NCBI GenBank assembly: GCA_024704765.1
Contig: JAKMXF010000302.1
Location: forward strand, 186,001-250,000
Source: Oopsacas minuta
Lineage: Eukaryota; Animalia; Porifera
Length of the DNA stretch: 64,000 nucleotides
Direction: 5' to 3'
Position 1 is the first letter of the stretch; the number at the start of each line of letters is the position of its first letter. This document shows, piece by piece, positions 1 through 13,054 of the stretch. The notes under the pieces were generated by a model. That model saw only the letters and a list, made by a program, of their open reading frames with translations, searched no databases and was not told the origin of the DNA. Made by a program: the position numbers and the translations under genes.

Positions 1-1311
1 GTTTTGTGAGAGAAGAGATAGGTCGTAACCTAGCTCATCTTGTTTACAATATGCATTCATTAGTTCTAAAGAAGGTAGCGATACATTATATACACCATTC
101 TCACAGTACAGAATGTATCTGTAAGCTGAATTAGGATCTGTTATAATGTATGGAGGATTAGTGAATATATTCACAGTATTTTTAGTTGACTTATCTTCAG
201 GATTTAAGTCTACAACCTCTAGAAGGAATATTATATCATCAGGTGATTTCTCAGGGAGAGAGGTTGATGTTTGTGTGGGAGGAGTATTGAGGTGTACACA
301 GTGATATAACTTCCCTGGTGCAGTTACAATTACAAAACTAGGAACAGCTGATCGTAAACAGGCTATTTTGCATGGTTCATCCTCGTAGGATTCTGGAGGT
401 GATGGGTGTATTGGTAACGCATCTGAGTATGTAATCCCATCTCCTCTACCCATATCGATCTGACTTAAGTCCATAGATATGAAGTGTACATCTCCATTCC
501 CTAATAGGAGATAGAGTGACAGCCATTGACCTCCTGGTGTCTTACCAGAGCTAGGTATAGTGAAGTCAAATGATACAGGTTCATCACCCATAGCGTGAGA
601 TAGGGATATCGTAGTGGAGATTCCGGAGTTTGGGTTAGGGTTCAAGTTGTACATGCTGAGAGGTTCTAGAGTGTCTGTGGGTGAGAAAATCCGCAGATAA
701 CCGTCAGAGCAAAGTGTGAAAATAAGCATCGCTGAGAGTTCCACAGGAGAAAAGTGCACTTCCTTGATGTCTACCTTCCTACCCCTTGGCTTATCAGTAT
801 ATACTTGAATTTGATTACAACGTATAGTGGTTGAGAGAGGCTTAGTTAGATGATGAGAATAGGTACGAGCATCATAGATAAACTTAGGTAGACTGAGGAG
901 ATAAGCAGAATCCTTAGAGACTAGAATACAGAGAGATCCGTCTGGGGATAGAATTAGTTGAATGATCGTGGTTTGAGGTTCTGGAGAGAGACGGAGTATA
1001 GGCCAGTTTGGAGGAGATAAGATGTCTATTGTGACTAGTGAGACTGCATTAATCTCACGCTTAGAAGGGAACCACAGTAATAGGATTCCTTTACAAGAAG
1101 CTGTGAGATTGAGTATAGATGGTGCACATTGACTTTCCGAAGTAGTTGGTAGTATCGAGTATTTGAGAGAATTAAATATTTCATGACTTGATAGCTTGTC
1201 AGTCCAAGAAGAGAAATCGGACTCTGAAATACTCGAACGAACAGAACGCTGGAACATATCTCCTGATGGAGTATTGAGGCTGTTAATAGGTGCAGTCAGA
1301 GAGTCAGACAT
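1..1311 (-). CDS. NUP88: Nucleoporin Nup88, N-terminal beta-propeller part; runs off the left edge of the window
   Basis: Not in the ORF track because there is no stop in the window. Manual translation from ATG at 1311 stays open to base 1. It contains LSPDGSLCILV, MGDEPVSFDF, LYLLLGNGDVH, LPIHPSPPESYEDEPCKIACL, PGKLYHCVHL and DPNSAYRY, collinear with human NUP88 (LGETAVAFDF, LYILYENGETF, LPMHPAAEDNYG, SGMLYHCVVL, DPKCPSRY). Confidence 0.85.
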   Translation of the reverse strand, partial: MSDSLTAPINSLNTPSGDMFQRSVRSSISESDFSSWTDKLSSHEIFNSLKYSILPTTSESQCAPSILNLTASCKGILLLWFPSKREINAVSLVTIDILSPPNWPILRLSPEPQTTIIQLILSPDGSLCILVSKDSAYLLSLPKFIYDARTYSHHLTKPLSTTIRCNQIQVYTDKPRGRKVDIKEVHFSPVELSAMLIFTLCSDGYLRIFSPTDTLEPLSMYNLNPNPNSGISTTISLSHAMGDEPVSFDFTIPSSGKTPGGQWLSLYLLLGNGDVHFISMDLSQIDMGRGDGITYSDALPIHPSPPESYEDEPCKIACLRSAVPSFVIVTAPGKLYHCVHLNTPPTQTSTSLPEKSPDDIIFLLEVVDLNPEDKSTKNTVNIFTNPPYIITDPNSAYRYILYCENGVYNVSLPSLELMNAYCKQDELGYDLSLLSQN

Positions 1312-1413
1312 AACCTATGAATATATCTAACAAATTTTAAAATTAGTTAATTAATATTTCGGTTCAGTTCTTAGTGAATACATTATTTTATTACTGAAAT
1401 AAATTTAATTCTT

Positions 1414-1749
1414 TTATTCTCTAATTACAAATACTTGATCTATATATCTTTCTGGGACTATAAGGATGGAATGTTTTCGTTTCTTTTTAGAATCTCCTAG
1501 CTGGTCTATACTCTGATACTCATCGCACTTCTCTAGAATTATGTTTAGAGCATTGTCTGTACAATGGAACTTCCCCTTCAATACCCTACCATCTTTAGCT
1601 AGTATAACCATCTTCTTGCTGAGTAGTGACCTTATGTAATCACGCCCTGTAAGTGGTTTAGAAATATGTTCTGTTTTATCATCTGTACTATTGGTGGTAG
1701 TAGTATCAGTGGTATTTGTCCCTACTATGTGCTCGTCTTGATTGCTCAT
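1414..1749 (-). CDS. NAA38: NatC auxiliary subunit NAA38 (LSMD1), Sm-fold protein
   Basis: Sm1 motif LLSKKMVILAKDGRVLKGKFHCTDNALNIILEKCDEY with the NAA38-type F-x-CTD signature, and an Sm2-like ILIVPERYI. Confidence 0.75.
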   Translation of the reverse strand: MSNQDEHIVGTNTTDTTTTNSTDDKTEHISKPLTGRDYIRSLLSKKMVILAKDGRVLKGKFHCTDNALNIILEKCDEYQSIDQLGDSKKKRKHSILIVPERYIDQVFVIRE

Positions 1750-1839
1750 TGCTAATTGTAAATAAAAATATACAAATTTAATAATACCTATCTTATATAT
1801 GTAAGTTATACGTTCATGAGCTATCTACAGTACAATTGA

Positions 1840-2847
1840 ATGAGTATATACGAAGAGAGTGCTTTAGAGATCCAGCTTACAGCAGAACTCCTGCTACTGA
1901 GAGGAGGGAAGAGAGCAGAGCTTCTCGGGCCAGTAGCATCAGTATTCAGCTCTCTATCCAGGTGTCTGGACAGCGCTATAGCTAACAGCAAGACTCTACT
2001 CATTAGCATCCAATCTGTACTAGACTTCCTCAGATCTTCACATGTATCAGGATCATATAACAAACGAGAACAAGCTAGGATAGTAGACCTGTTGACTAGC
2101 TCAGCTATCTATCTCATAGAGCATTCAGCTCATGCTGCTTATCACGTGGGTGTACGCTCCTCTGGGAGTAAGCGCGCTGTCATGGGTGTTATTGATTTGT
2201 ATCGTATAAGTAAGGCTAGGTACCTTGTTAACAGATGTATACGTCAGCTGACAGAAGGAGAGACCAGTGAAGACGGAGTAGGGATACTAGCAACTGGAAT
2301 AAGCAGATGTGTAGCTGAAAATGTCTGTGTATTCGTTAGAACATGTTCTCGTGCTGCTGAACACGAGCTAGTGCCTTCAAATAAGCGAGAGCAGTTAGGT
2401 TTGCTAGCTCAATCTATACAGGCATGTTCTGCTTCATTCTTAACTTCACTCAAATCTCTATGCAGTGAGAAAGATGGTCATATTTGTATTCTATTCAGTA
2501 GACCGTTACTTGCGGCACTTGACACATGTATAGACTATCTGGTAGAAGCAGGAGATGTATTGTTAGGACAACCAGCTCAGCTGAGTGCAGAAGGACAAAA
2601 TATACAACTCAAGATCCTAGGCATAGCAATGTCAGTTGTTTCTGGTTGTGCGAAATTCTTGTCAACAGCCGCGAAACTTGAATCAAAGGAGGTTAAGGAC
2701 AATAGATGGCATCAGTTGTTGAAATGCCAAATCGCGGTTACTGACTCCTCAAACATGTTAACTTCCCTACTACAAGATCAAGCTCCTTCTCCAGCCAAGA
2801 ATATACAGCACAAATCTCAAAATTCTCAAATAAAAGCTCTCTACTAG
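1840..2847 (+). CDS. TLNRD1: Talin rod domain-containing protein 1 (MESDC1)
   Basis: CILFSRPLL, LLGQPAQLSAEGQNIQLKILGIAMSVVSGC and CQIAVTDSSNML match the TLNRD1 C-terminal helical bundle ([30 protein letters not shown]). Confidence 0.85.
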   Translation: MSIYEESALEIQLTAELLLLRGGKRAELLGPVASVFSSLSRCLDSAIANSKTLLISIQSVLDFLRSSHVSGSYNKREQARIVDLLTSSAIYLIEHSAHAAYHVGVRSSGSKRAVMGVIDLYRISKARYLVNRCIRQLTEGETSEDGVGILATGISRCVAENVCVFVRTCSRAAEHELVPSNKREQLGLLAQSIQACSASFLTSLKSLCSEKDGHICILFSRPLLAALDTCIDYLVEAGDVLLGQPAQLSAEGQNIQLKILGIAMSVVSGCAKFLSTAAKLESKEVKDNRWHQLLKCQIAVTDSSNMLTSLLQDQAPSPAKNIQHKSQNSQIKALY

Positions 2848-2962
2848 CTTATTATAATATCTAATGGCAACTATATTTTCTTATAATAACTTTATATTAT
2901 TCTTATATTTGATATCAAATTTATTCTATAAATATATTTATTGGATATTTTATTTGTGTAAA

Positions 2963-4297
2963 CTAGAATTGATGTGTACTAGAGTTATTCGATTCGTATA
3001 CTACACATCCCCGTATAACGACAGTCTCAATCATAGAGTCAGTTTCACCGAACTGATATATGAGATGCTCCCATCTCTCTGCGGCTAGTATCAACAAATT
3101 CGCGTACTTTCCAGGCTCCAAACTTCCGTGTTTATCACTCTTCTTAAGCGCAGCTGCAGCATTAATAGTACTAGCAACTAATGCTTCCTCCATGCTCAAG
3201 TTCAATAGCACACATGCTAAATGCATAACCATAGGCATGTTCATGCAATAGGCATTAGGATTGAAATCACTTCCTAAAGCAATGGCTACTCCTTTCTCTA
3301 GCATGAGTCTAGCTGGTGGGCGCTTTAGACGCAGAATATAGGCAGTAGTTGGTAATAATATAGCTATAGTAGAAGATTTGGCAATTGCTTGTATTCCTTC
3401 AGGAGAAATCTCTTCTAAGTGACTAACGGCACATGAGTTAAGTTCTGCGGCTAATTCCGCGGAATTTGTCGGGTTAAGTTCATCTCCATGGAAATTTATA
3501 TTCAATCCTATATCAACACCAGCCTTTAGTATTTTTCTTGTTTCTACTATGTCAAATACTCCTTTCTCACAGAACACATCAATATTATCAATATTAAGTT
3601 CTCCTTTATAAATAAGCTCCTTTAGAGCTGGTATTTGGTTAGCGATTACGTCATTGCTTGCTTCTTGTAGTGACATTGATTTCGGTATTGTATGTGCTCC
3701 ACAGTAAGTGGAAGATATTTCAATTGGCTGAGCGGATTTCCCGCTTTCTATCACCTCCAGCATCTTAATCTCATTCTGGGTATCAAGTCCATATCCACTT
3801 TTAGCTTCTAGCAGAGTGGTACCATGACGTAGCATCTTTCTGAGTCTGTTCATGAACAGAGACAAGAGATAATCTTTGGTAGCTTCGTGTGTCTTATCTA
3901 CTGTATGGTGTATACCCCCTCCTTTCTCATGTACTTCTAGATAAGTAGCTCCCGCTAGCTTCATAGCAAACTCATGTACTCTGTCTCCTGCCCAGACTGG
4001 GTGTGTATGTGCATCTACTAATCCGGGAATTACACACTTACCCGTTGCATCAATATTTCTACGAAATGTAACGCCAGAGTACTTTATATCAGCATCTATA
4101 TCTAAGCAGACATCAGCTATTATACCTGCGTTATCGACTATTATAGAAACTCCACTGTTATCAGTTCTATCTACTACAGCAATATTCTTCATCTCAGAAC
4201 CTTTTAGCATCAGCTGTCTGTTTCTACATATCTGTACTACCTGTTTAGCGTTACGTATCCTAAGGAGATATTCTCCTGTCATCTTACTAGCGGCCAT
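2963..4297 (-). CDS. AMDHD1: Imidazolonepropionase (histidine catabolism, HutI-type)
   Basis: PGLVDAHTHPV metal motif, EAKSGYGL, DVFCEKGVF, FHGDEL, SHLEE, ALGSDFNPN; intronless. Confidence 0.97.
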   Translation of the reverse strand: MAASKMTGEYLLRIRNAKQVVQICRNRQLMLKGSEMKNIAVVDRTDNSGVSIIVDNAGIIADVCLDIDADIKYSGVTFRRNIDATGKCVIPGLVDAHTHPVWAGDRVHEFAMKLAGATYLEVHEKGGGIHHTVDKTHEATKDYLLSLFMNRLRKMLRHGTTLLEAKSGYGLDTQNEIKMLEVIESGKSAQPIEISSTYCGAHTIPKSMSLQEASNDVIANQIPALKELIYKGELNIDNIDVFCEKGVFDIVETRKILKAGVDIGLNINFHGDELNPTNSAELAAELNSCAVSHLEEISPEGIQAIAKSSTIAILLPTTAYILRLKRPPARLMLEKGVAIALGSDFNPNAYCMNMPMVMHLACVLLNLSMEEALVASTINAAAALKKSDKHGSLEPGKYANLLILAAERWEHLIYQFGETDSMIETVVIRGCVVYESNNSSTHQF

Positions 4298-4428
4298 TAA
4301 AATGATTTGCTCGCCTCTAATGCAGTGCTACTGTGTGAATATCTAATTTTGTTATAAAGTCTGTAGTAGATATTTTATAATTTTACTGAAATGATCGATA
4401 ATATAGCCTAAAAATATGTTAATTGAAT

Positions 4429-7400
4429 CTATTTGAACCTGTCTAGTACTGAATAGTTCCCTTCTAAGATCCGTTTCTTTTTTAGGATTGCGTTTTTTCT
4501 TGCTTCTTTCTGTTTCTTGAAAGATATTTCTTGTTTTTTCGCTCTCTTCTCCATCGTGTTTATCTGTTTTAATGCTCCTGACTTTCCTCTCTTCCTAAAG
4601 TCGGCTCTTTTTGCGGTTTTTACCGCCTCTTCTTCTTTCTGTTTCAACATTACCAGTTCCTCTTGAGTCATATCAGCTATATTTTTAATACTATCAGCTT
4701 TTAAAGAGATCAATTCAGACTGAATCTTTTCTAACAACATTTTAACTTCATGCTCTCTTCTCTGTGACTTTGTCTGATAAGGATTAGCTTCTAAAGAATC
4801 TATATTAGGTTCTGCTGATCCAGGAATAAGTATACTAGAAAACCCAGCACCATGTCCAATACCTAGAACATCTTCATACGGACAGAACTCTATGGAGTTT
4901 ATTACGTCATCACAGTAGTGCTTCATGAATGGTGTATGTAAATCCTTGGAGAATGGTTCATGATATGTAACTATCTAATGGATAATATTATAATACATAT
5001 ACGTAATAATACGAGCATATTACTAGTTACCTTCCTGCCAGAACCAATTGCCAGTATATTCCTCTGGCTCAAACACATTGTAGTTGCAGGAGAGAATGTT
5101 TTAATCTCTCCTAAACTCTTGTAAGTTCTCACATCCCATATACGGACCTTAGAATCTACACCCCCAGTTATCATGTACTGTCCATCACTATCTATCACCA
5201 TTGATTTGATAGGTCCTCTATGACATAGCATCTTAACCAATGGTTCAGGTGTATTAGGACTCCATAGGGTAACAGTACCGTTAGAATGTCCTACATGGAC
5301 TATCCCGTTGTGAGTATTATGAGTCAAACAGTGTGTACGACCTAAACGTGTACAGATGCTAGCTATCTGTTCTCCAGTAGAAGTATCCGTGTACTGTAGG
5401 AACCCTCTCTTATTGACAGATACGAGCAGAAAATGGTAAGGAAGGAAGTCTAATCCACACACCTGATGGTGTGTCTTTAAACAATGTAGTTCTATGCCTT
5501 GTTTATCATAGATGTATACATATCTAGATAAACATACAAATTAATAAATTATTATACAAACTTGGAATATAGATGCTGTGCCTAAGAATCGCGGTCAGAC
5601 GCAGACTAGTGAGCTCATTACGAGCTCATTACCGTGCTGTGAGTACTACTTCCTCATTGCTGTCTACTCAGAAGAATAAACACGTATATAGTGAGGTTGT
5701 AGAGGGTGGAGTTCTGGTGATACGTATGGATACACAGGGGAGTAAAGTTAACACGTTATCACCGGAGTTCAGTAGCGAACTTATAGCCGAAATGGAGACA
5801 GGTTTGAGACGAGATGACGTCAATTCTGCGGTTCTTATCAGCTCAAAACCTGGTACCTTTATAGCAGGAGCAGACATAGCCTGGCTAGATCAAGCGAGTA
5901 GTCATGAAGAAATGAAAGAAATTTCACAGGGTGGACAAACAATGATTCAATCAATGGAGAGCAGTCATAAACCAGTTATAGCTGCTATAAACGGATCATG
6001 TTTAGGAGGTGGATTAGAGGTAGCACTCGGTTGTCACTACAGAATAGCAATGAATGAGTCTAAAACTAAATTAGGACTCCCTGAAGTTATGTTAGGCCTA
6101 CTACCCGGTGCTGGGGGTACACAGAGACTGCCTAGGCTGATCGGACTACAAGAAGCTTTACCTCTGCTACTGACTGGTAAACAGGTAAGATGACGTCATT
6201 AAATCTATAGTAATTAGTTATTATACATTATTTGTTTAGTTGAAAGCTGATAAGGCAAAAAGAATCGGTCTAGTAGATCAGCTGATACAGCCAATAGGTG
6301 CTGGTATCACAGATGCTACACAGAATAACATCAATTACTTAGAAACCGTTGCTATACAAACAGCCAAGAATTTAGCCTCAGGGAAACAGAAGCTACCAGA
6401 GAGAACTAAGTCTTGGATGAGTATGAAAGGATTAATGTTTAATTTGATAACACATACTAAATACGGTCGTAACTATGCATTGGATCAAGGTAGGAAGATG
6501 GTTATGAAACAAACACAGGGTGTGTATCCTGCTCCGCTAAAGATATTAGACGTCACTAAAGTAGGTTTAGAGAAGGGAGGAGTAGAGGGGTACGATGCTG
6601 AATCTGATGGGTTCGCTACCTTGGGAATGACACCACATTCCAAAGCACTGAAAAGTATATTTTTCGCACAAACTGAGAGTAAGAAGAATCGTTTTGGACC
6701 TCCGAAGAAATCCGCAAAAAATATCGCGGTTTTAGGTGCTGGTCTAATGGGAGCAGGGATAGCTCAAGTGAGTATCGATAAAGCTATGAAAGTGATATTA
6801 AAAGATACAAATACTCAAGGCATAACTCGCGGTTATCAGCAGATATATAAGGGTATGAATCAGCGAACAAAGAGAAGGTCTATCACAAGTTTTCAGCGAG
6901 ATCAAATAATGTCAAATTTGGCTACACAAACAGATTACAGTCAATTCAACGGTATGGACATGATAATAGAAGCTGTATTTGAAGATATAAATCTTAAACA
7001 TATTGTACTCAAGGAGTGTGAAGCTAACACATCAGCTGATTGTATATTCGCTAGTAACACCTCAGCTCTTCCTATTACAGAGATAGCTGCAATCAGTAGT
7101 AGACCTGAAAATGTAGTAGGTATGCATTACTTCAGTCCTGTAGATAAAATGCCCTTATTGGAGATAATAACCACAAAGAAAACTTCAAAGGAAGCTGCCT
7201 CAATGGCAGTAGACGTAGGACTAAGACAAGGTAAGACTGTTATCGTGGTTGGAGATGGACCGGGTTTCTATACAACTAGGATATTAGCTCCTATGTTAGC
7301 GGAGTGTCTCTCTCTATTTCAGGAGGGTGTAAACCCTCATGATCTTGACAACTATACTAAATCCTTTGGCTGGCCAGTTGGCATGGCAACACTAGCAGAT

Positions 7401-9863
7401 GAGGTAGGCATAGACGTAGCTTATCACGTGTCTAAGGATATGTTGAAAAGATTTGGGCCTAGAATAGGAGGAGCAGACATAGGACTGCTAGAAGCACTCT
7501 TTAATGCTGGATATCTAGGTAGGAAGGCTGGTAAGGGAGTATATGTATATTCTGATAAGAGTAAAGATAGGAAAATTAATGAAGGAGCTGAAGCTATACT
7601 GAAGCAGTTCAGCAGACAGACTAAAGGTAGTATTGAAAAGGAAGAAGTGCAGTGGAGAATTGCTTCCAGATTCATTAACGAGGCTATTTATACCCTCCAG
7701 GAGGAGATCCTCAGCTCCCCTACTGATGGAGATCTAGGCGCTATTTTCGGACTTGGTTTTCCGCCGTTCCACGGAGGTCCATTCAGATTTATTGACACAA
7801 TTGGAGCTAACAAATTTCTAACCAAGATGATGACCTTTAGAGATGTATACGGTGAACAATTTGAACCAGCTCCACTGCTGGTAGATATGGCTAAGAACAA
7901 CAAGAGATTCCATCCAAACTGATCCGTTGTCAAGCATGACAGATACATATCTATGTGATAGTCAATTATTTAGGTTAGGACAGGAATGTTTATCGATATA
8001 TTATTAGCTAATTAAACTCTACTACATTCTTGGCATCTATATTTTACGGGTAAGCACGTATATACCTGATAACAAGTAATAATAATTATACCACGTCAAC
8101 AATAATGAATGAGATTTCTTTTACTGAATTAGTGTCTAAGTCGAAATCTATAATAAATTACCCTACAAATATAATGATATAACTTACAAACTATATTCTC
8201 ATTATTAACCATTAACTTAACACAACTTCATTAAAATCCAGAATTTACTGACTTCCATTCCAACAATCTTATTAGAGTTTTTCAACGTATAATATTTGCA
8301 ATAATCATCAATAATGTCAATTAAGAGATTTATATCAAATCAATCCCGGAATATTCATCATTCTAGAAATGCGCAAACACAAAATAAACAAGATATAAGC
8401 GTCAACTCTAAAATACCCAGTGAAGGAAAACAGAATCGCTACCATCTCTATATGTCATACGCCTGTCCTTTTGCTCACAGAGCAATGCTTGTACGATCTT
8501 TGAAAGGCCTAGATAAGGTTATATCAGCTTCTGCACTGTGGGTAGATAATGAGAGTCGTTATATATTCTCTGGTAATCCAGATGAAGGTTCCATCGACCC
8601 ATATAATAAGAAGAAGACTCTAATGGATGTTTATAAGATGAATAAATTCAAAAGTAAAGCTACAGTACCAGCTCTATTCGATATTAATTCTAACAGAATC
8701 ATTAACAACAAAAGTGCAGAGATAATGCGTATGTTCAATTCTTCATTTAACGAATTCGCAGAATATCCTAATCATGATTTCTACCCCTGTAATCTTAGGA
8801 AGACGATAGATTCAACTAGCGAATGGATACACAGAGATATCAACAAGGGGGTTTATTCGGTGGGAGCTGCTATAAGACAGATAATATATGATAAACAAGT
8901 TGGCAAAGTATTTGAAGCGTTAGATAAGGCAGAAGAAATATTGTCTAAACAGAGATATATGTGTGGGGATATATTAACTGAAGCTGATTTGAAGTTATTC
9001 CCTAGCCTGATACGATTTGATTCCATCTACTACACGTTATTTTATTGCAACAAGAAAATGTTGAGAGAATATGAACATTTATCTGGCTATATGAGGGAGA
9101 TATACCAAATACCAGGAGTTGAAAGTACGGTTAGCACGGAGCATATCAAGGCAATCTATATGAAGTATCGTAAAGATAATAATCCCAGGAGAATTATACC
9201 AATTGGACCTACAGTTGATTTACACTCTCCCCATGGGAGAGACCATATTTAGGGAAGAAAAATGTTGTAACAATAAATGTATTATCATTCTTAACCATTT
9301 AATTAAATAACTTACTTTTTCTGTGCAACTGCAAACATGTTTTCATTGTGTAAGTACTGAACATCTCTTACAGTCTCCTTCAGTTGAAACTCACAGGTCA
9401 GTTTCTTAGACATCCAATCAATGGAGGCTATGTGTCCTCTGTTACCCCCTATCAAGAGGTAACGACCTGAACGTGAATAGTTTATATTATAAGGTCCGAG
9501 TTTAGGTAGTGTTAACTCGAATCTCTTACTAGCACTGATAAGATCAGATTGCTGTAGTATATCTTCTTGCGTTAGTCGTAGCGTTTTAGACTTTTCTATT
9601 TTCTCTAATTCTTCACTCGCTTTAACATGTGTATCAATATACCCAGCGGTTTCTGGAAGATGTGATTGGTAAAGATCCACCTCTTTGTCAACAGGTTTTG
9701 TCTTCTTGTGTACTTGCTTTGTTTGTTTGTAGTATTTTTTCGGTGTTTTCTTGTTGATTGATTTGTTTGCATTAAAATACCGTTGTTCTCCAAATTTGTA
9801 ACTTTTGCTTCTTTGTGATATTTTTTTCACATATTTCTGTTTCTTTTTGGTTTCTCTAGACAT
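4429..9863 (-). CDS. WDR46: WD repeat protein 46 (Utp7/BING4), SSU processome; 3 exons, intron 1 hosts two nested genes
   Basis: Exons 9863-9316, 5523-5031 and 4974-4429 (1587 nt, 528 aa). Donor AA|GTAAGT at 9315 and acceptor TCTAG at 5524 join [20 protein letters not shown], matching human [20 protein letters not shown]. Intron 2 (5030-4975, 56 bp) is GT-AG and in frame. BING4CT motif [12 protein letters not shown] is present. Confidence 0.93.
5573..7922 (+). CDS. HADHA: Mitochondrial trifunctional enzyme alpha subunit (enoyl-CoA hydratase / 3-hydroxyacyl-CoA dehydrogenase); nested in WDR46 intron 1
   Basis: Exons 5573-6184 and 6240-7922, joined by a 55 bp GT-AG intron. Arg-rich mitochondrial presequence; [43 protein letters not shown] and GMHYFSP. 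Confidence 0.97.
8314..9252 (+). CDS. Glutathionyl-hydroquinone reductase (YqjG/ECM4-type, Xi/omega-like GST); nested in WDR46 intron 1
   Basis: [55 protein letters not shown] and [10 protein letters not shown] follow GHR family motifs; intronless. Confidence 0.88.
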   Translation: MSIKRFISNQSRNIHHSRNAQTQNKQDISVNSKIPSEGKQNRYHLYMSYACPFAHRAMLVRSLKGLDKVISASALWVDNESRYIFSGNPDEGSIDPYNKKKTLMDVYKMNKFKSKATVPALFDINSNRIINNKSAEIMRMFNSSFNEFAEYPNHDFYPCNLRKTIDSTSEWIHRDINKGVYSVGAAIRQIIYDKQVGKVFEALDKAEEILSKQRYMCGDILTEADLKLFPSLIRFDSIYYTLFYCNKKMLREYEHLSGYMREIYQIPGVESTVSTEHIKAIYMKYRKDNNPRRIIPIGPTVDLHSPHGRDHI

Positions 9864-10581
9864 GTTGACTAAATATTTCAAAAATCACAAAAAATTAATT
9901 CATATTCCGTTGCATCTTATTATCACGGGTTTTGATATATGAAAAGTCTTTCTAATATTATTCTCCGTTATACAAACATACAAGCGTTTCTATAAATTAC
10001 ATTCACAATGTATTGAGTGCATTATTTTGCTTCAGAAGAGGAGTACAGATTTTTCAATTTTGCCAAATCAAGATACACACATTACTGAGGTTGTATTCTT
10101 TTAAATTAGTTTGTTATGACCTAATTAACACAGTGATAGTTCTAATTAATGATTAATTAGAATGTCGATGTAATCGCCAGAACTGTCCTCGAAACTCGTC
10201 TAATATGGTTAGATTTCCAACGAAATCAATAAATTTTACGCATCTCAGAAAGGAAATAAATATTACAATATTCACTGTATGATTTAATGATAAATTTGTA
10301 CATACATATATGGAAATGTACTAACTAGAACTATACTAATTCAAACATATGCAACATAGAATTGTATAGAAATATTTTCTATAGCGTAAACAGGGTGTAG
10401 AAGCCCAATGAGCTTAAGTAAAAAGGGAAAAAGAACTGTTTAAAAGTCTGTAATACATAAAATATAGTTACACGCATACCAATAAGAAGATAAAATATTT
10501 AGACATGAATACAAAATAGGATAAATCAATGAATACGGGCTTAATCTTAGTGATATAAATTTAAAACAACCAAAAACAAAA

Positions 10582-13054
10582 TTATACATCTTCAACAGTT
10601 TTTCTCTTATGCAGTTCATCTTCTAATTGAGAGCATTTCTTCTTCAAAACTTTTATAATTTCTTCCAACTCTTTACAACGTTCAACTTCAGCTTCTTGTG
10701 GTTTCATCCTTGGATTCCACTGAATATAGTAGTTGGTCCATAAGTCTAGTTTCCTTATGCTGGCTACAGGGTGCAGCACTCTCTGAGCCAATTGGGGTTG
10801 ATATAGGACATTAGTGTACAAGTTTTTCTGGCAGTTAATATAAGTCCAGAGCGATTCAGTGAAGTTCTGAACTGGATAAAATATAGTGCGTTCTCTCTCA
10901 CAATTGTAAAGAAAAGTAGCAAACAGACAGCTATACAAGTGTTGTAGGATTGTTAGTAGAAACTTCTCATTGAACTCAAAGTCAAAAGGGAATTGCATTA
11001 TCATCTAAAATAATATAATAATAATATTATTGTAGTACTTGTGAATTAGTTAATTATACCTGCCAAACACAATCAATAAACTGTAGGAAAATAGGAGATC
11101 TTTGCTCATCCAAATGATTCTTCTTCCCATGTCCTATCCTGTCATTAAACTTGTGTCCAAAGCTTAGCCATTCCTTCTGAATCAAAACTTCAAATCCCTC
11201 AATAGTCCTGTAGTATGGATCTAGTAGTAGCTGAGCTAGAGAGGTCAATTGAGCTGTACGGTCCCATCCATCTGAACAATGTACCAGCACAGTAGCAGCA
11301 TCTCTAATAGAGTATATAACTTAACAAGAATGACTCCATACAACGGATAATCCCCACTAACCTATCTACTGCTTGCACTATTTTATTCGTAGAATCTAAT
11401 ATGAGACGAATATATTCTAACCATCGAGTATCCTCCAGTTTAGTATACCAGTTTGTATTATCAACACCGTTGAAACACAACTCGTACAGTTTACGTTGAC
11501 TCTCACGCATAACATGTATGTTAGGAATATCTAAGAAGGTTATATGCATATTTTGGTAGTTATCATCTTGTTCATAGCCTCCTCCCTTCATAGTGTTAGC
11601 CTGCGCATTTACTTTAGGTCTAGCATCAAATATATATATCATATGTGTTTGAGGATTTGTACGCATTATGCTCTGTAGATACTGCTCATCATCTCTGTTC
11701 CTTCTGTTCAGACTTCCTGGCTATATGAAAGTCAATAATTACTTGGTATGACTAATGTGTTAATTAAGCTTACCAGAGGCTGGCTAGATCTACAGATACA
11801 GGCTCCATTGCTTTTTAGCCAGGATAACACAGGAATACGGTTTCTGCTCCTAAAAGCAGTAGTCAGTCTCAATGCTTCATCACTCACACTGGCAGGTACT
11901 ACTAAAGTCTTTGAATAAGTGTCACATAATTGATAGTTCTGATTAGCCTATTCAGATAACGATAAGTTATACGATACTATATGGATTTACCCTTAAAGTT
12001 ACTCACAGATGTAAATCTCCATTTCCCGTTTGCTATTTTAAGTCTTTGATAATCCTTCTCAATGTCAGCAAGAGCCCACCCATCATGGTACTTGCCCGGG
12101 TATGTAGGCTTGTATCTGAAAGCGAAGAATTGTCCAGGTGGGCTATTGAAAATGAATGCTAATTTGCAGATCATATTCACAATATCATTACGACTATATT
12201 CTGTAGTAAGCTTGAGAGCAAGTAGAATACTTCTAAAATCTTTACAATGAATCTCTAATCCATACGCGTACTCTCCTCTTGATCTCTTTCCTCCTACCTT
12301 TTCTACGTGATTAACACATCCCAGAGGAATCTACACACATTCAATTGCATAAATTTGAAGATAAATAAATACACACAAATTAATTACTTGTAAGTTTGTG
12401 GATTGATCTTGCTCATTACCCTTGAAGTATACTTTATAATCAGTTATATAGAAATAACCTGTTACCGGATTACCGAATGGGTTCATGTATACGACAGAAG
12501 CTTCATCTGTTTTGAAGTAAAGGACCTCTCCCTCTCTCATCGGTATGTTAGCTCTCGTTACAGATAATTTGTCTCTGCTGGTAAGCGAGGGTCTTAAAAT
12601 AGAAGAATGTTCTTGTTCATCAGTTGAGCTGAGAAGAGCATTTGATGGGAAAGATTGATCGGGGGCTGATAATGGTGTCAGTACAGACAGCTATGACATA
12701 AATATAATATAAACAATATTTTTAATATATAGTTTTTGAAACAATTACCTCTTGAGAAATCTCTTTATCTGTATCAGAAGTATCATCAAAATCATCACTC
12801 GTATAAGACAAGTGAGGACGATTGGAATTAACTATCAGCGTATCATCCACAGATACCTTCATTTTGGGAATATTATTGGTGGTAGTGGGGATGCTCTCTT
12901 TCCTCTCTTTAAGCTCTCTAGACTTTGCATATTCAAACAAGTCTTCTAGACTAAGTGAGCGTTGTTTGAAGGGTTTTTTATTTTCCACTTCTAAGAACCC
13001 TCTTCCTGACATTTTTCTATTTCTAGCAAGAAATGTTCGTAACACTTTAATCAT
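10582..13054 (-). CDS. MTMR2: Myotubularin-family PI3P/PI(3,5)P2 phosphatase (MTM1/MTMR1/MTMR2 clade), 7 exons
   Basis: Exons 13054-12749, 12690-12388, 12330-12007, 11947-11774, 11720-11362, 11303-11060 and 11004-10582 (all GT-AG, 2133 nt, 710 aa). PH-GRAM segment [14 protein letters not shown], catalytic [13 protein letters not shown] domain and C-terminal coiled coil. Confidence 0.92.

Follow-up and report, generated by a model that had tools for sequence, protein, structure and literature searches.

Gene organization of the WDR46 locus

The window analysed here is a 64,000-nucleotide stretch of the Oopsacas minuta genome (assembly GCA_024704765.1, contig JAKMXF010000302.1, positions 186,001 to 250,000, forward strand), and all coordinates below refer to it. 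Three genes were identified at positions 4429 to 9863. A gene for WDR46/Utp7 occupies the minus strand, and the genes for HADHA and for a Xi-class GST are located on the plus strand, within the limits of the first WDR46 intron. The features are as follows.

4429..4974, minus strand: WDR46 exon 3, 181 codons and stop, BING4CT domain
4975..5030, minus strand: WDR46 intron 2, 56 nt, phase 0, GTAACT...TTAG
5031..5523, minus strand: WDR46 exon 2, 1 base and 164 codons, WD40 blades
5524..9315, minus strand: WDR46 intron 1, 3792 nt, phase 2, GTAAGT...TCTAG, contains the nested genes
5573..6184, plus strand: HADHA exon 1, 204 codons, enoyl-CoA hydratase domain preceded by a presequence-like N-terminus, donor CAG|GTAAGA
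6185..6239, plus strand: HADHA intron, 55 nt, phase 0, GTAAGA...TTTAG
6240..7922, plus strand: HADHA exon 2, 560 codons and stop, 3-hydroxyacyl-CoA dehydrogenase domains
7923..8313, no strand: AT-rich spacer between HADHA and GST, 27% GC
8314..9252, plus strand: Xi-class GST / glutathionyl-hydroquinone reductase, intronless and intact, 312 aa and stop
9272..9307, plus strand: hexamers resembling poly(A) signals, downstream of the GST stop, AATAAA at 9272 and ATTAAA at 9302, pattern match only
9316..9863, minus strand: WDR46/Utp7 exon 1, coding from the ATG at 9863, 548 nt (182 codons and 2 bases)

The spliced gene models were compared with databases exon by exon. Exon 1 of WDR46 aligned with residues 160-255 of human WDR46 (E 1.4e-27) and 105-197 of Chaetomium Utp7. 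Exon 2 aligned with residues 259-395 of the human protein and, from its very first residue, with residues 199-351 of Utp7 (E 1.1e-51). The codon split between the two exons corresponds to Utp7 residue 198. As exon 1 follows Utp7 as far as residue 197 and exon 2 resumes at 199, nothing is missing at the junction. The joined exons read ...AVAQK|KYVYIYD, and an uninterrupted ...AVAQKKY[VL]YIYD... is present in proteins of other organisms. Profile searches matched WD40 families in exon 2 and PF08149 (BING4CT, NUC141) in exon 3, the latter over profile positions 1-78 of 79 (E 6.4e-35). Only one BING4CT locus was counted in the O. minuta genome, making WDR46 a single-copy gene. When intron 2 was read through in frame, a stop was met. 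A preliminary description of this DNA had proposed that WDR46 reads continuously once 9315..5524 is spliced out, and the exact colinearity with Utp7/WDR46, the complete BING4CT domain and the single-copy status bear this out. Judged from its orthology, WDR46 is predicted to be an SSU-processome protein with a role in 18S rRNA processing.

The HADHA gene is intact and colinear with residues 31-762 of human HADHA. Exon 1 contains the Pfam domain ECH_1 (E 1.9e-30) and matched human residues 31-208 (E 9.6e-53), and exon 2 contains 3HCDH_N and 3HCDH and matched residues 208-762 (E 3.2e-190). For both exons human HADHA was the best match, ahead of bacterial FadJ/FadB and the peroxisomal enzyme. The residues flanking the intron, TGKQ|LKADKAK, are colinear with TGRSIRADRAK of the human protein. 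A 24-residue stretch at the N-terminus is basic and lacks acidic residues. These matches assign the guest to the alpha subunit of the mitochondrial trifunctional protein. HADHB-like thiolase exons were located on contig C33 and not on contig C302, which carries the window, and the separation of HADHA from HADHB proposed earlier is thereby corroborated.

The second guest matched poplar GHR1 (4USS) over residues 29-310 (E 9e-74) and E. coli YqjG (E 4.8e-67), contains the Pfam domains GST_N_2 and GST_C_2, and has a catalytic-type CPFA motif aligned to CPWA (SYACPFAHR versus SYACPWASR). By these matches it is a Xi-class GST / glutathionyl-hydroquinone reductase (GHR, YqjG, ECM4), predicted to deglutathionylate glutathionyl-hydroquinones. 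An origin by HGT was rejected, as orthologues of 42-45% identity are present in oysters, abalone, sea urchins, an octocoral and a tardigrade. A protein of 51% identity, P0128, was considered as a distant orthologue and rejected, being a paralogue encoded on another contig of the same sample as locus L002 (see below).

Both coding sequences lie wholly inside the host intron, spanning 5573..7922 and 8314..9252. Calculated from the coordinates and with the 55-nt HADHA intron included, they account for 3289 of its 3792 nt, or 87%. The donor GTAAGT occupies 9315..9310 and the acceptor ...TATCTAG ends at 5524. The HADHA ATG (5573) is situated 49 nt from the last base of the host intron, and 63 nt separate the final base of the GST stop codon (9252) from the donor G. 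Upon re-reading, every coordinate given in the preliminary description for this phase-2 intron was upheld, as were the two spacings and the presence of an intact HADHA gene, with an intron of its own, and an intact reductase gene within it. The short length reported for nearby introns agrees with the 56 nt of WDR46 intron 2 and the 55 nt of the HADHA intron. The spacer at 7923..8313 presumably holds the HADHA 3' end and the GST promoter. The poly(A)-signal-like hexamers end just short of the host donor, and their positions suggest that the GST 3' end may be at or near this donor. An intronic snoRNA or other RNA, plausible in a ribosome-biogenesis host, was rejected after searches of the intron returned neither a tRNA nor any Rfam match at E<=1.

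Conservation of the nest in related loci

The locus was compared with seven related loci (L001-L004 and L018-L020) from six public ENA assemblies of diverged relatives (analyses ERZ25071281, ERZ25072740, ERZ25766962, ERZ20067936, ERZ25069837 and ERZ25072730). These loci sit on long contigs (300 kb to 1.57 Mb) that were assembled independently from six further samples. The order amidohydrolase, WDR46 exons 3 and 2, HADHA, GST, WDR46 exon 1 and myotubularin was kept in all seven. All seven likewise had a phase-2 GTRAGT donor (GTAAGT or GTGAGT) and a YTTAG acceptor at the same codon, with a host intron of 3790-4374 nt. At the position of WDR46 intron 2 the relatives had GT..AG introns of about 51-64 nt. 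A comparison of the WDR46 intron position and of HADHA synteny in related genomes had been proposed in the preliminary description, and its outcome was the same layout and the same splice codon throughout.

The relatives are considerably diverged from O. minuta. Amino-acid identity was 63-71% for WDR46 exon 1 and 85-91% for HADHA exon 2, compared to 63% between the latter and Amphimedon. Nucleotide identity of HADHA to the window was 74-82%. Synonymous differences in WDR46 were near or at saturation (pS 0.54-0.86), and dN/dS was about 0.03-0.17 for all three exons, on both sides of intron 1 (0.08-0.17 for exon 1 and 0.025-0.04 for exon 2). The nest and the host splice sites are deeply conserved under purifying selection. 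No conserved non-coding block was found in the nest beyond short patches common to the window and its closest relative. A nest shared with demosponges was also considered and was not seen, the HADHA gene of Amphimedon having neither WDR46 nor GST within 10 kb. The Amphimedon gene is divided into at least 10 coding pieces over 16 kb, and its 10 kb flanks yielded no thiolase gene call.

The distance between the HADHA ATG and the host acceptor was more variable. It measured 49 nt in the window and 44, 60, 145 and 250 nt in L001, L003, L004 and L002, respectively. Three of the five species examined thus had a gap of 44-60 nt.

Probable splicing of the host intron and alternative explanations

The minus-strand intron 1 of WDR46 is very probably spliced and hosts plus-strand HADHA and the Xi-class GST. 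Splicing of the 9316-to-5523 junction is inferred from colinearity with Utp7 and from the conserved splice signals. Against this reading, a word search with exon 1 yielded no junction-spanning product; the hits were all genomic-style open reading frames of 180-187 aa that end at the in-frame TAA of the donor. Transcription of WDR46/Utp7, a single-copy and essential ribosome-biogenesis gene, would cover about 5.4 kb of the minus strand. Ordinary GT-AG splicing would then remove intron 1 and unite the two parts of a single WD40 propeller protein with a length of about 528 aa. HADHA and GST are independent, intact genes, each presumably with its own promoter and poly(A) site. A rearrangement removing the guests would break the essential host gene, which could explain the persistence of the nest.

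A different arrangement was considered in which insertion of HADHA and GST split WDR46 into two separately expressed genes, one for a 183-aa N-terminal protein ending at the TAA of the donor and one for a C-terminal protein with the WD40 and BING4CT parts. A 183-aa product of the window, P0241, is present in the protein collection and matches exactly the open reading frame obtained when exon 1 is read through. In addition, the O. minuta annotation lists only 83 nested genes (PMC10282587), so it may contain models split in this way. However, the in-frame stop after exon 1 is to be expected, because a phase-2 GTAAGT or GTGAGT donor yields it automatically. The proposed fission point cuts through the WD40 propeller in a protein that is colinear with Utp7 to the residue. 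A usable in-frame start for a stand-alone C-terminal half was sought in the window without success; a separate C-terminal protein is implausible because Met is first encountered in frame at residue 98 of exon 2, and no start codon in exon 2 was found to be conserved among the related loci. Furthermore, a canonical donor and acceptor in the same phase were retained in seven of seven related loci despite near or full synonymous saturation. Fission of WDR46 is accordingly regarded as extremely unlikely. Nothing speaks for a misjoin that placed HADHA and GST between two parts of WDR46, beyond what is generally possible with a draft of 365 scaffolds. Misassembly is ruled out for practical purposes, its probability being negligible, because the independent long-read assemblies from six other samples carry the same order and orientation on seven long contigs.

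An overlap of the HADHA promoter with WDR46 exon 2, and interference or co-regulation resulting from it, had been inferred in the preliminary description. This would be a functional relationship in which the head-to-head arrangement of HADHA with the acceptor and exon 2 of WDR46 was selected and antisense transcription couples ribosome biogenesis to beta-oxidation. The nest is old. Where the gap is only 49 nt (window), 44 nt (L001) or 60 nt (L003), a core promoter at this place would have to overlap the host 3' splice region or exon 2. However, the gap is 145 nt in L004 and 250 nt in L002, and since it ranges from 44 to 250 nt among loci, conservation does not demand a tight overlap. Alignment of the non-coding DNA in the nest is limited to short patches, solely with the closest relative, and exon 2, taken overall, is saturated at synonymous sites. 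Nests are also very frequent in the glass-sponge lineage (PMC10282587), which fits neutral retention. Selection for such coupling is therefore considered highly improbable. The related proposal, that the HADHA core promoter forms part of the WDR46 acceptor region and exon 2 and that mechanical coupling preserved the nest as synonymous sites drifted close to saturation, is rated marginally higher but is still very unlikely. If true, HADHA transcription would be mechanically coupled to WDR46 splicing or elongation.

The reading of two independent guest genes in a spliced WDR46 intron is thus preferred. Its chief value is practical, as the essential, single-copy WDR46 of O. minuta thereby receives a correct model with three exons. 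The nest has been kept in seven glass-sponge lineages whose synonymous sites are almost or fully saturated, and this neatly illustrates how difficult it is to reverse a nest after it has formed. No new question is opened by the WDR46 nest.

Comparison with known nested and head-to-head genes

In vertebrates, HADHA and HADHB form a head-to-head pair with a shared bidirectional promoter. The HADHA gene of O. minuta similarly starts back-to-back with the sequence of another gene at a very short distance, but its partner is WDR46 exon 2 and not HADHB. Intron 27b of human NF1 contains OMG, EVI2A and EVI2B on the opposite strand. As in WDR46, several opposite-strand genes are thus present in one intron, and the NF1 host is spliced normally. 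The NF1 intron is tens of kb in length with much non-coding DNA, whereas only 49 and 63 nt lie between the guests in WDR46 and the splice sites of their host.

About 2,400 nested genes (2432) are described in the glass sponge Aphrocallistes vastus (Francis et al. 2023, PMC10282587), and different glass sponges have conserved nests in common. According to the same source, nests are under-called in the annotation of O. minuta, with its 83 nested genes, and the WDR46 nest is one more documented case among those under-called. No mention of WDR46 hosting HADHA and a Xi-class GST was found in the available portion of Francis et al. 2023 (PMC10282587). The WDR46 nest is a clean, ordinary and well-supported example of a phenomenon that is already known and very common in glass sponges. 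It resembles the nests of A. vastus and O. minuta (PMC10282587) in having complete guests in a host intron of a compact hexactinellid genome, and differs in its pair of tandem guests, which take up 87% of the 3.8 kb intron.

Structure and continuity of the WDR46 host gene

The host gene lies in an AT-rich eukaryotic window (about 35-40% GC) with very short introns. The preliminary description had placed an intron of 3792 nt at 9315..5524 in the minus-strand frame of WDR46, and reading of the sequence gave exactly these boundaries. Two complete antisense genes were said to lie inside it, HADHA with its own intron and a reductase, and both were found there on the plus strand. The coordinates were as follows.

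Features of the WDR46 nest (window coordinates)
9863 (ATG)..9316, minus strand: WDR46 exon 1, 548 nt, open frame followed by GTAAGT
9315..9310, minus strand: GTAAGT donor of WDR46 intron 1, read from the sequence
9315..5524, minus strand: WDR46 intron 1, 3792 nt, phase 2, acceptor end ...TATCTAG at 5524
From 5523, minus strand: WDR46 exon 2, frame resuming after the acceptor
5030..4975, minus strand: WDR46 intron 2, 56 nt, phase 0, GTAACT...TTAG
Ending at TAG 4429..4431, minus strand: WDR46 exon 3, the last exon
5573..6184, plus strand: HADHA exon 1, colinear with human HADHA residues 31-208 (E 9.6e-53)
Between 6184 and 6240, plus strand: HADHA intron, 55 nt, phase 0, GTAAGA...TTTAG
6240..7922, plus strand: HADHA exon 2, colinear with human HADHA residues 208-762 (E 3.2e-190)
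8314..9252, plus strand: Xi-class GST/glutathionyl-hydroquinone reductase, one open frame of 312 aa

The length of exon 1 (548 nt) puts intron 1 in phase 2. Full codons number 182 in exon 1, 164 in exon 2 and 181 in exon 3; together with the single split codon they give a protein of about 528 aa. The frame of exon 1 is closed by a stop because of the TAA within the phase-2 GTAAGT donor. P0241, a 183-aa product of the window in the protein collection, consists of exon 1 with read-through to this TAA (9312-9863, minus strand). Should P0241 stem from the deposited annotation, that annotation divides WDR46 into separate genes.

Protein matches were obtained by searching each exon separately. Exon 1 aligned to residues 160-255 of human WDR46 (E 1.4e-27) and to residues 105-197 of Chaetomium Utp7, and exon 2 aligned from its very first residue to Utp7 199-351 (E 1.1e-51). 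The split codon thus corresponds to residue 198, and the junction is formed without a missing or extra residue. The motif AVAQKKY[VL]YIYD is uninterrupted in partial WDR46/Utp7 proteins from other organisms; the protein-collection entries P0248, P0250 and P0252 run through the junction codon, so that the intron is absent there in at least one other lineage. The BING4CT domain is complete in exon 3 (PF08149, E 6.4e-35, match to positions 1-78 of a 79-position profile). This domain occurs once in the whole assembly (61,460,524 bases, 365 contigs), and the gene in the window is therefore the only WDR46 gene of the genome. No in-frame Met was observed in exon 2 of the window upstream of residue 98, nor was a conserved start found in exon 2 among the relatives, which argues against separate translation of the C-terminal half.

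Guest genes and the location of HADHB

The coding spans of the guests take up 3289 of the 3792 intron bases, and no Rfam families or tRNA were found in intron 1. The distances from the host acceptor to the HADHA ATG (49 nt) and from the host donor to the GST stop (63 nt) agreed with those described before. HADHA comprises 764 aa with both the hydratase and the dehydrogenase domain; among named HADHA proteins, the one from the sponge Amphimedon is closest (63% identity). The top solved relatives of the guest GST were poplar GHR1 (E 9e-74) and E. coli YqjG, its CPFA motif pairing with the catalytic CPWA in the alignment. AATAAA at 9272 and ATTAAA at 9302 were matched as patterns downstream of its stop. 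Molluscs, echinoderms, an octocoral and a tardigrade have orthologues of it; horizontal transfer was rejected on this account, and the guest GST is an ordinary invertebrate gene. A second Xi-class GST, 51% identical to the guest, was observed at a locus unrelated to the nest (L016 10001-10948; ERZ25072740, contig ctg126169), in the same sample as the related locus L002.

Thiolase-domain matches were located on contigs C222, C150, C33 and C298 and classed as ACAT1-like, ACAT2-like, SCP2-thiolase, generic thiolase and HADHB-like (C33); the genome-wide search gave none on C302, the contig of the window. The best match of the C33 exons was the human trifunctional-protein beta subunit. HADHA and HADHB are consequently unlinked in O. 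minuta, in line with the separation proposed earlier. The HADHB-like gene (C33, about 150394-151289) has several short exons, in contrast to the nearly intronless HADHA, and its first exon matches human HADHB best.

Conservation and proposed expression of the nest

Relatives were found through HADHA exon 2, GST and WDR46 exon 1, each of which had close matches on long ENA contigs. Order and orientation were identical in all seven related loci (six samples): amidohydrolase, WDR46 exon 3, exon 2, HADHA, GST, WDR46 exon 1, myotubularin-related, Sec8 and P450. This shared layout excludes misassembly. The comparison of synteny and intron position proposed in the preliminary description accordingly favoured the nest, with phase and codon kept throughout: exon 1 ended and exon 2 started at the same codon in 7/7 loci, donors were phase-2 GTAAGT (GTGAGT in L004), acceptors were YTTAG, and the host intron measured 3790-4374 nt. 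Loci L002 and L020 were 99% identical and came from one sample, and are therefore probably haplotypes; HADHA DNA identities of 74-92% among the remaining loci gave six distinct relatives. Synonymous differences between the window and the relatives were near or at saturation (pS 0.54-0.86), with dN/dS values against the window of 0.08-0.17 in exon 1, 0.025-0.04 in exon 2 and roughly 0.07 in exon 3. Non-coding DNA could be aligned in short patches only, and with the closest relative only. Together, the shared layout, the near or full saturation of synonymous sites and the low dN/dS indicate that the nest is old and that purifying selection acts on both halves of WDR46. At least ten genes form a microsynteny block (window about 1-12000) that, containing Nup88, LSM, an unnamed gene of 325-345 aa, the amidohydrolase, the WDR46 nest, the myotubularin-related gene, Sec8 and P450, was kept in all seven loci (L001-L004, L018-L020).

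Transcription of the WDR46 pre-mRNA would run across both guests, with the 3.8 kb intron 1 then taken out by ordinary splicing, while the guests would be transcribed off the opposite strand via their own signals. The simplest reason for the persistence of the nest could be that a rearrangement deleting the guests would break an essential single-copy host. A closer functional coupling, in which a HADHA promoter overlapping WDR46 exon 2 leads to interference or co-regulation, had also been suggested. Such an overlap is geometrically reasonable in the window, L001 and L003, where 49, 44 and 60 nt separate the HADHA ATG from the host acceptor, but L004 and L002 have wider gaps, of 145 and 250 nt respectively; a tight overlap is thus not conserved, and coupling of this kind is unlikely.

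A YAG was observed within a few bases 5' of the HADHA ATG in four of five species (window, L001-L004), as TATAG, TTAGA, TATAGCTA and CTTAGA; in L003 the distance from the nearest YAG (TTAG) to the ATG is about 20 nt. The YAG could be the acceptor of a 5'-UTR intron or of a spliced leader, or a chance product of AT-richness. If the acceptor is real, HADHA transcription could start far from the ATG.

Comparison with Amphimedon and known glass-sponge nests

HADHA of the demosponge Amphimedon (L017, GL345161.1, 10001-26168) covers 16 kb in at least ten coding pieces; the glass-sponge gene has a single intron. Neither WDR46 nor GST was present within 10 kb of Amphimedon HADHA, and the nest is therefore not common to the Amphimedon lineage; no thiolase domain was seen among the genes called within the same distance. 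An intron of Amphimedon HADHA itself hosts an opposite-strand AIG1-type GTPase gene (L017 21050-24118, minus strand).

In Francis et al. 2023 (PMC10282587), 2432 nested genes (12.4% of genes) are given for the glass sponge Aphrocallistes vastus and just 83 for the O. minuta annotation, low counts in some genomes being ascribed to the annotation method. Microsynteny between the two species is described there as extensive, with many nests conserved. The main use of the present finding is a corrected WDR46 gene model; given the abundance of nests reported there for glass sponges, the WDR46 nest is a well-supported new case of a known and common arrangement.
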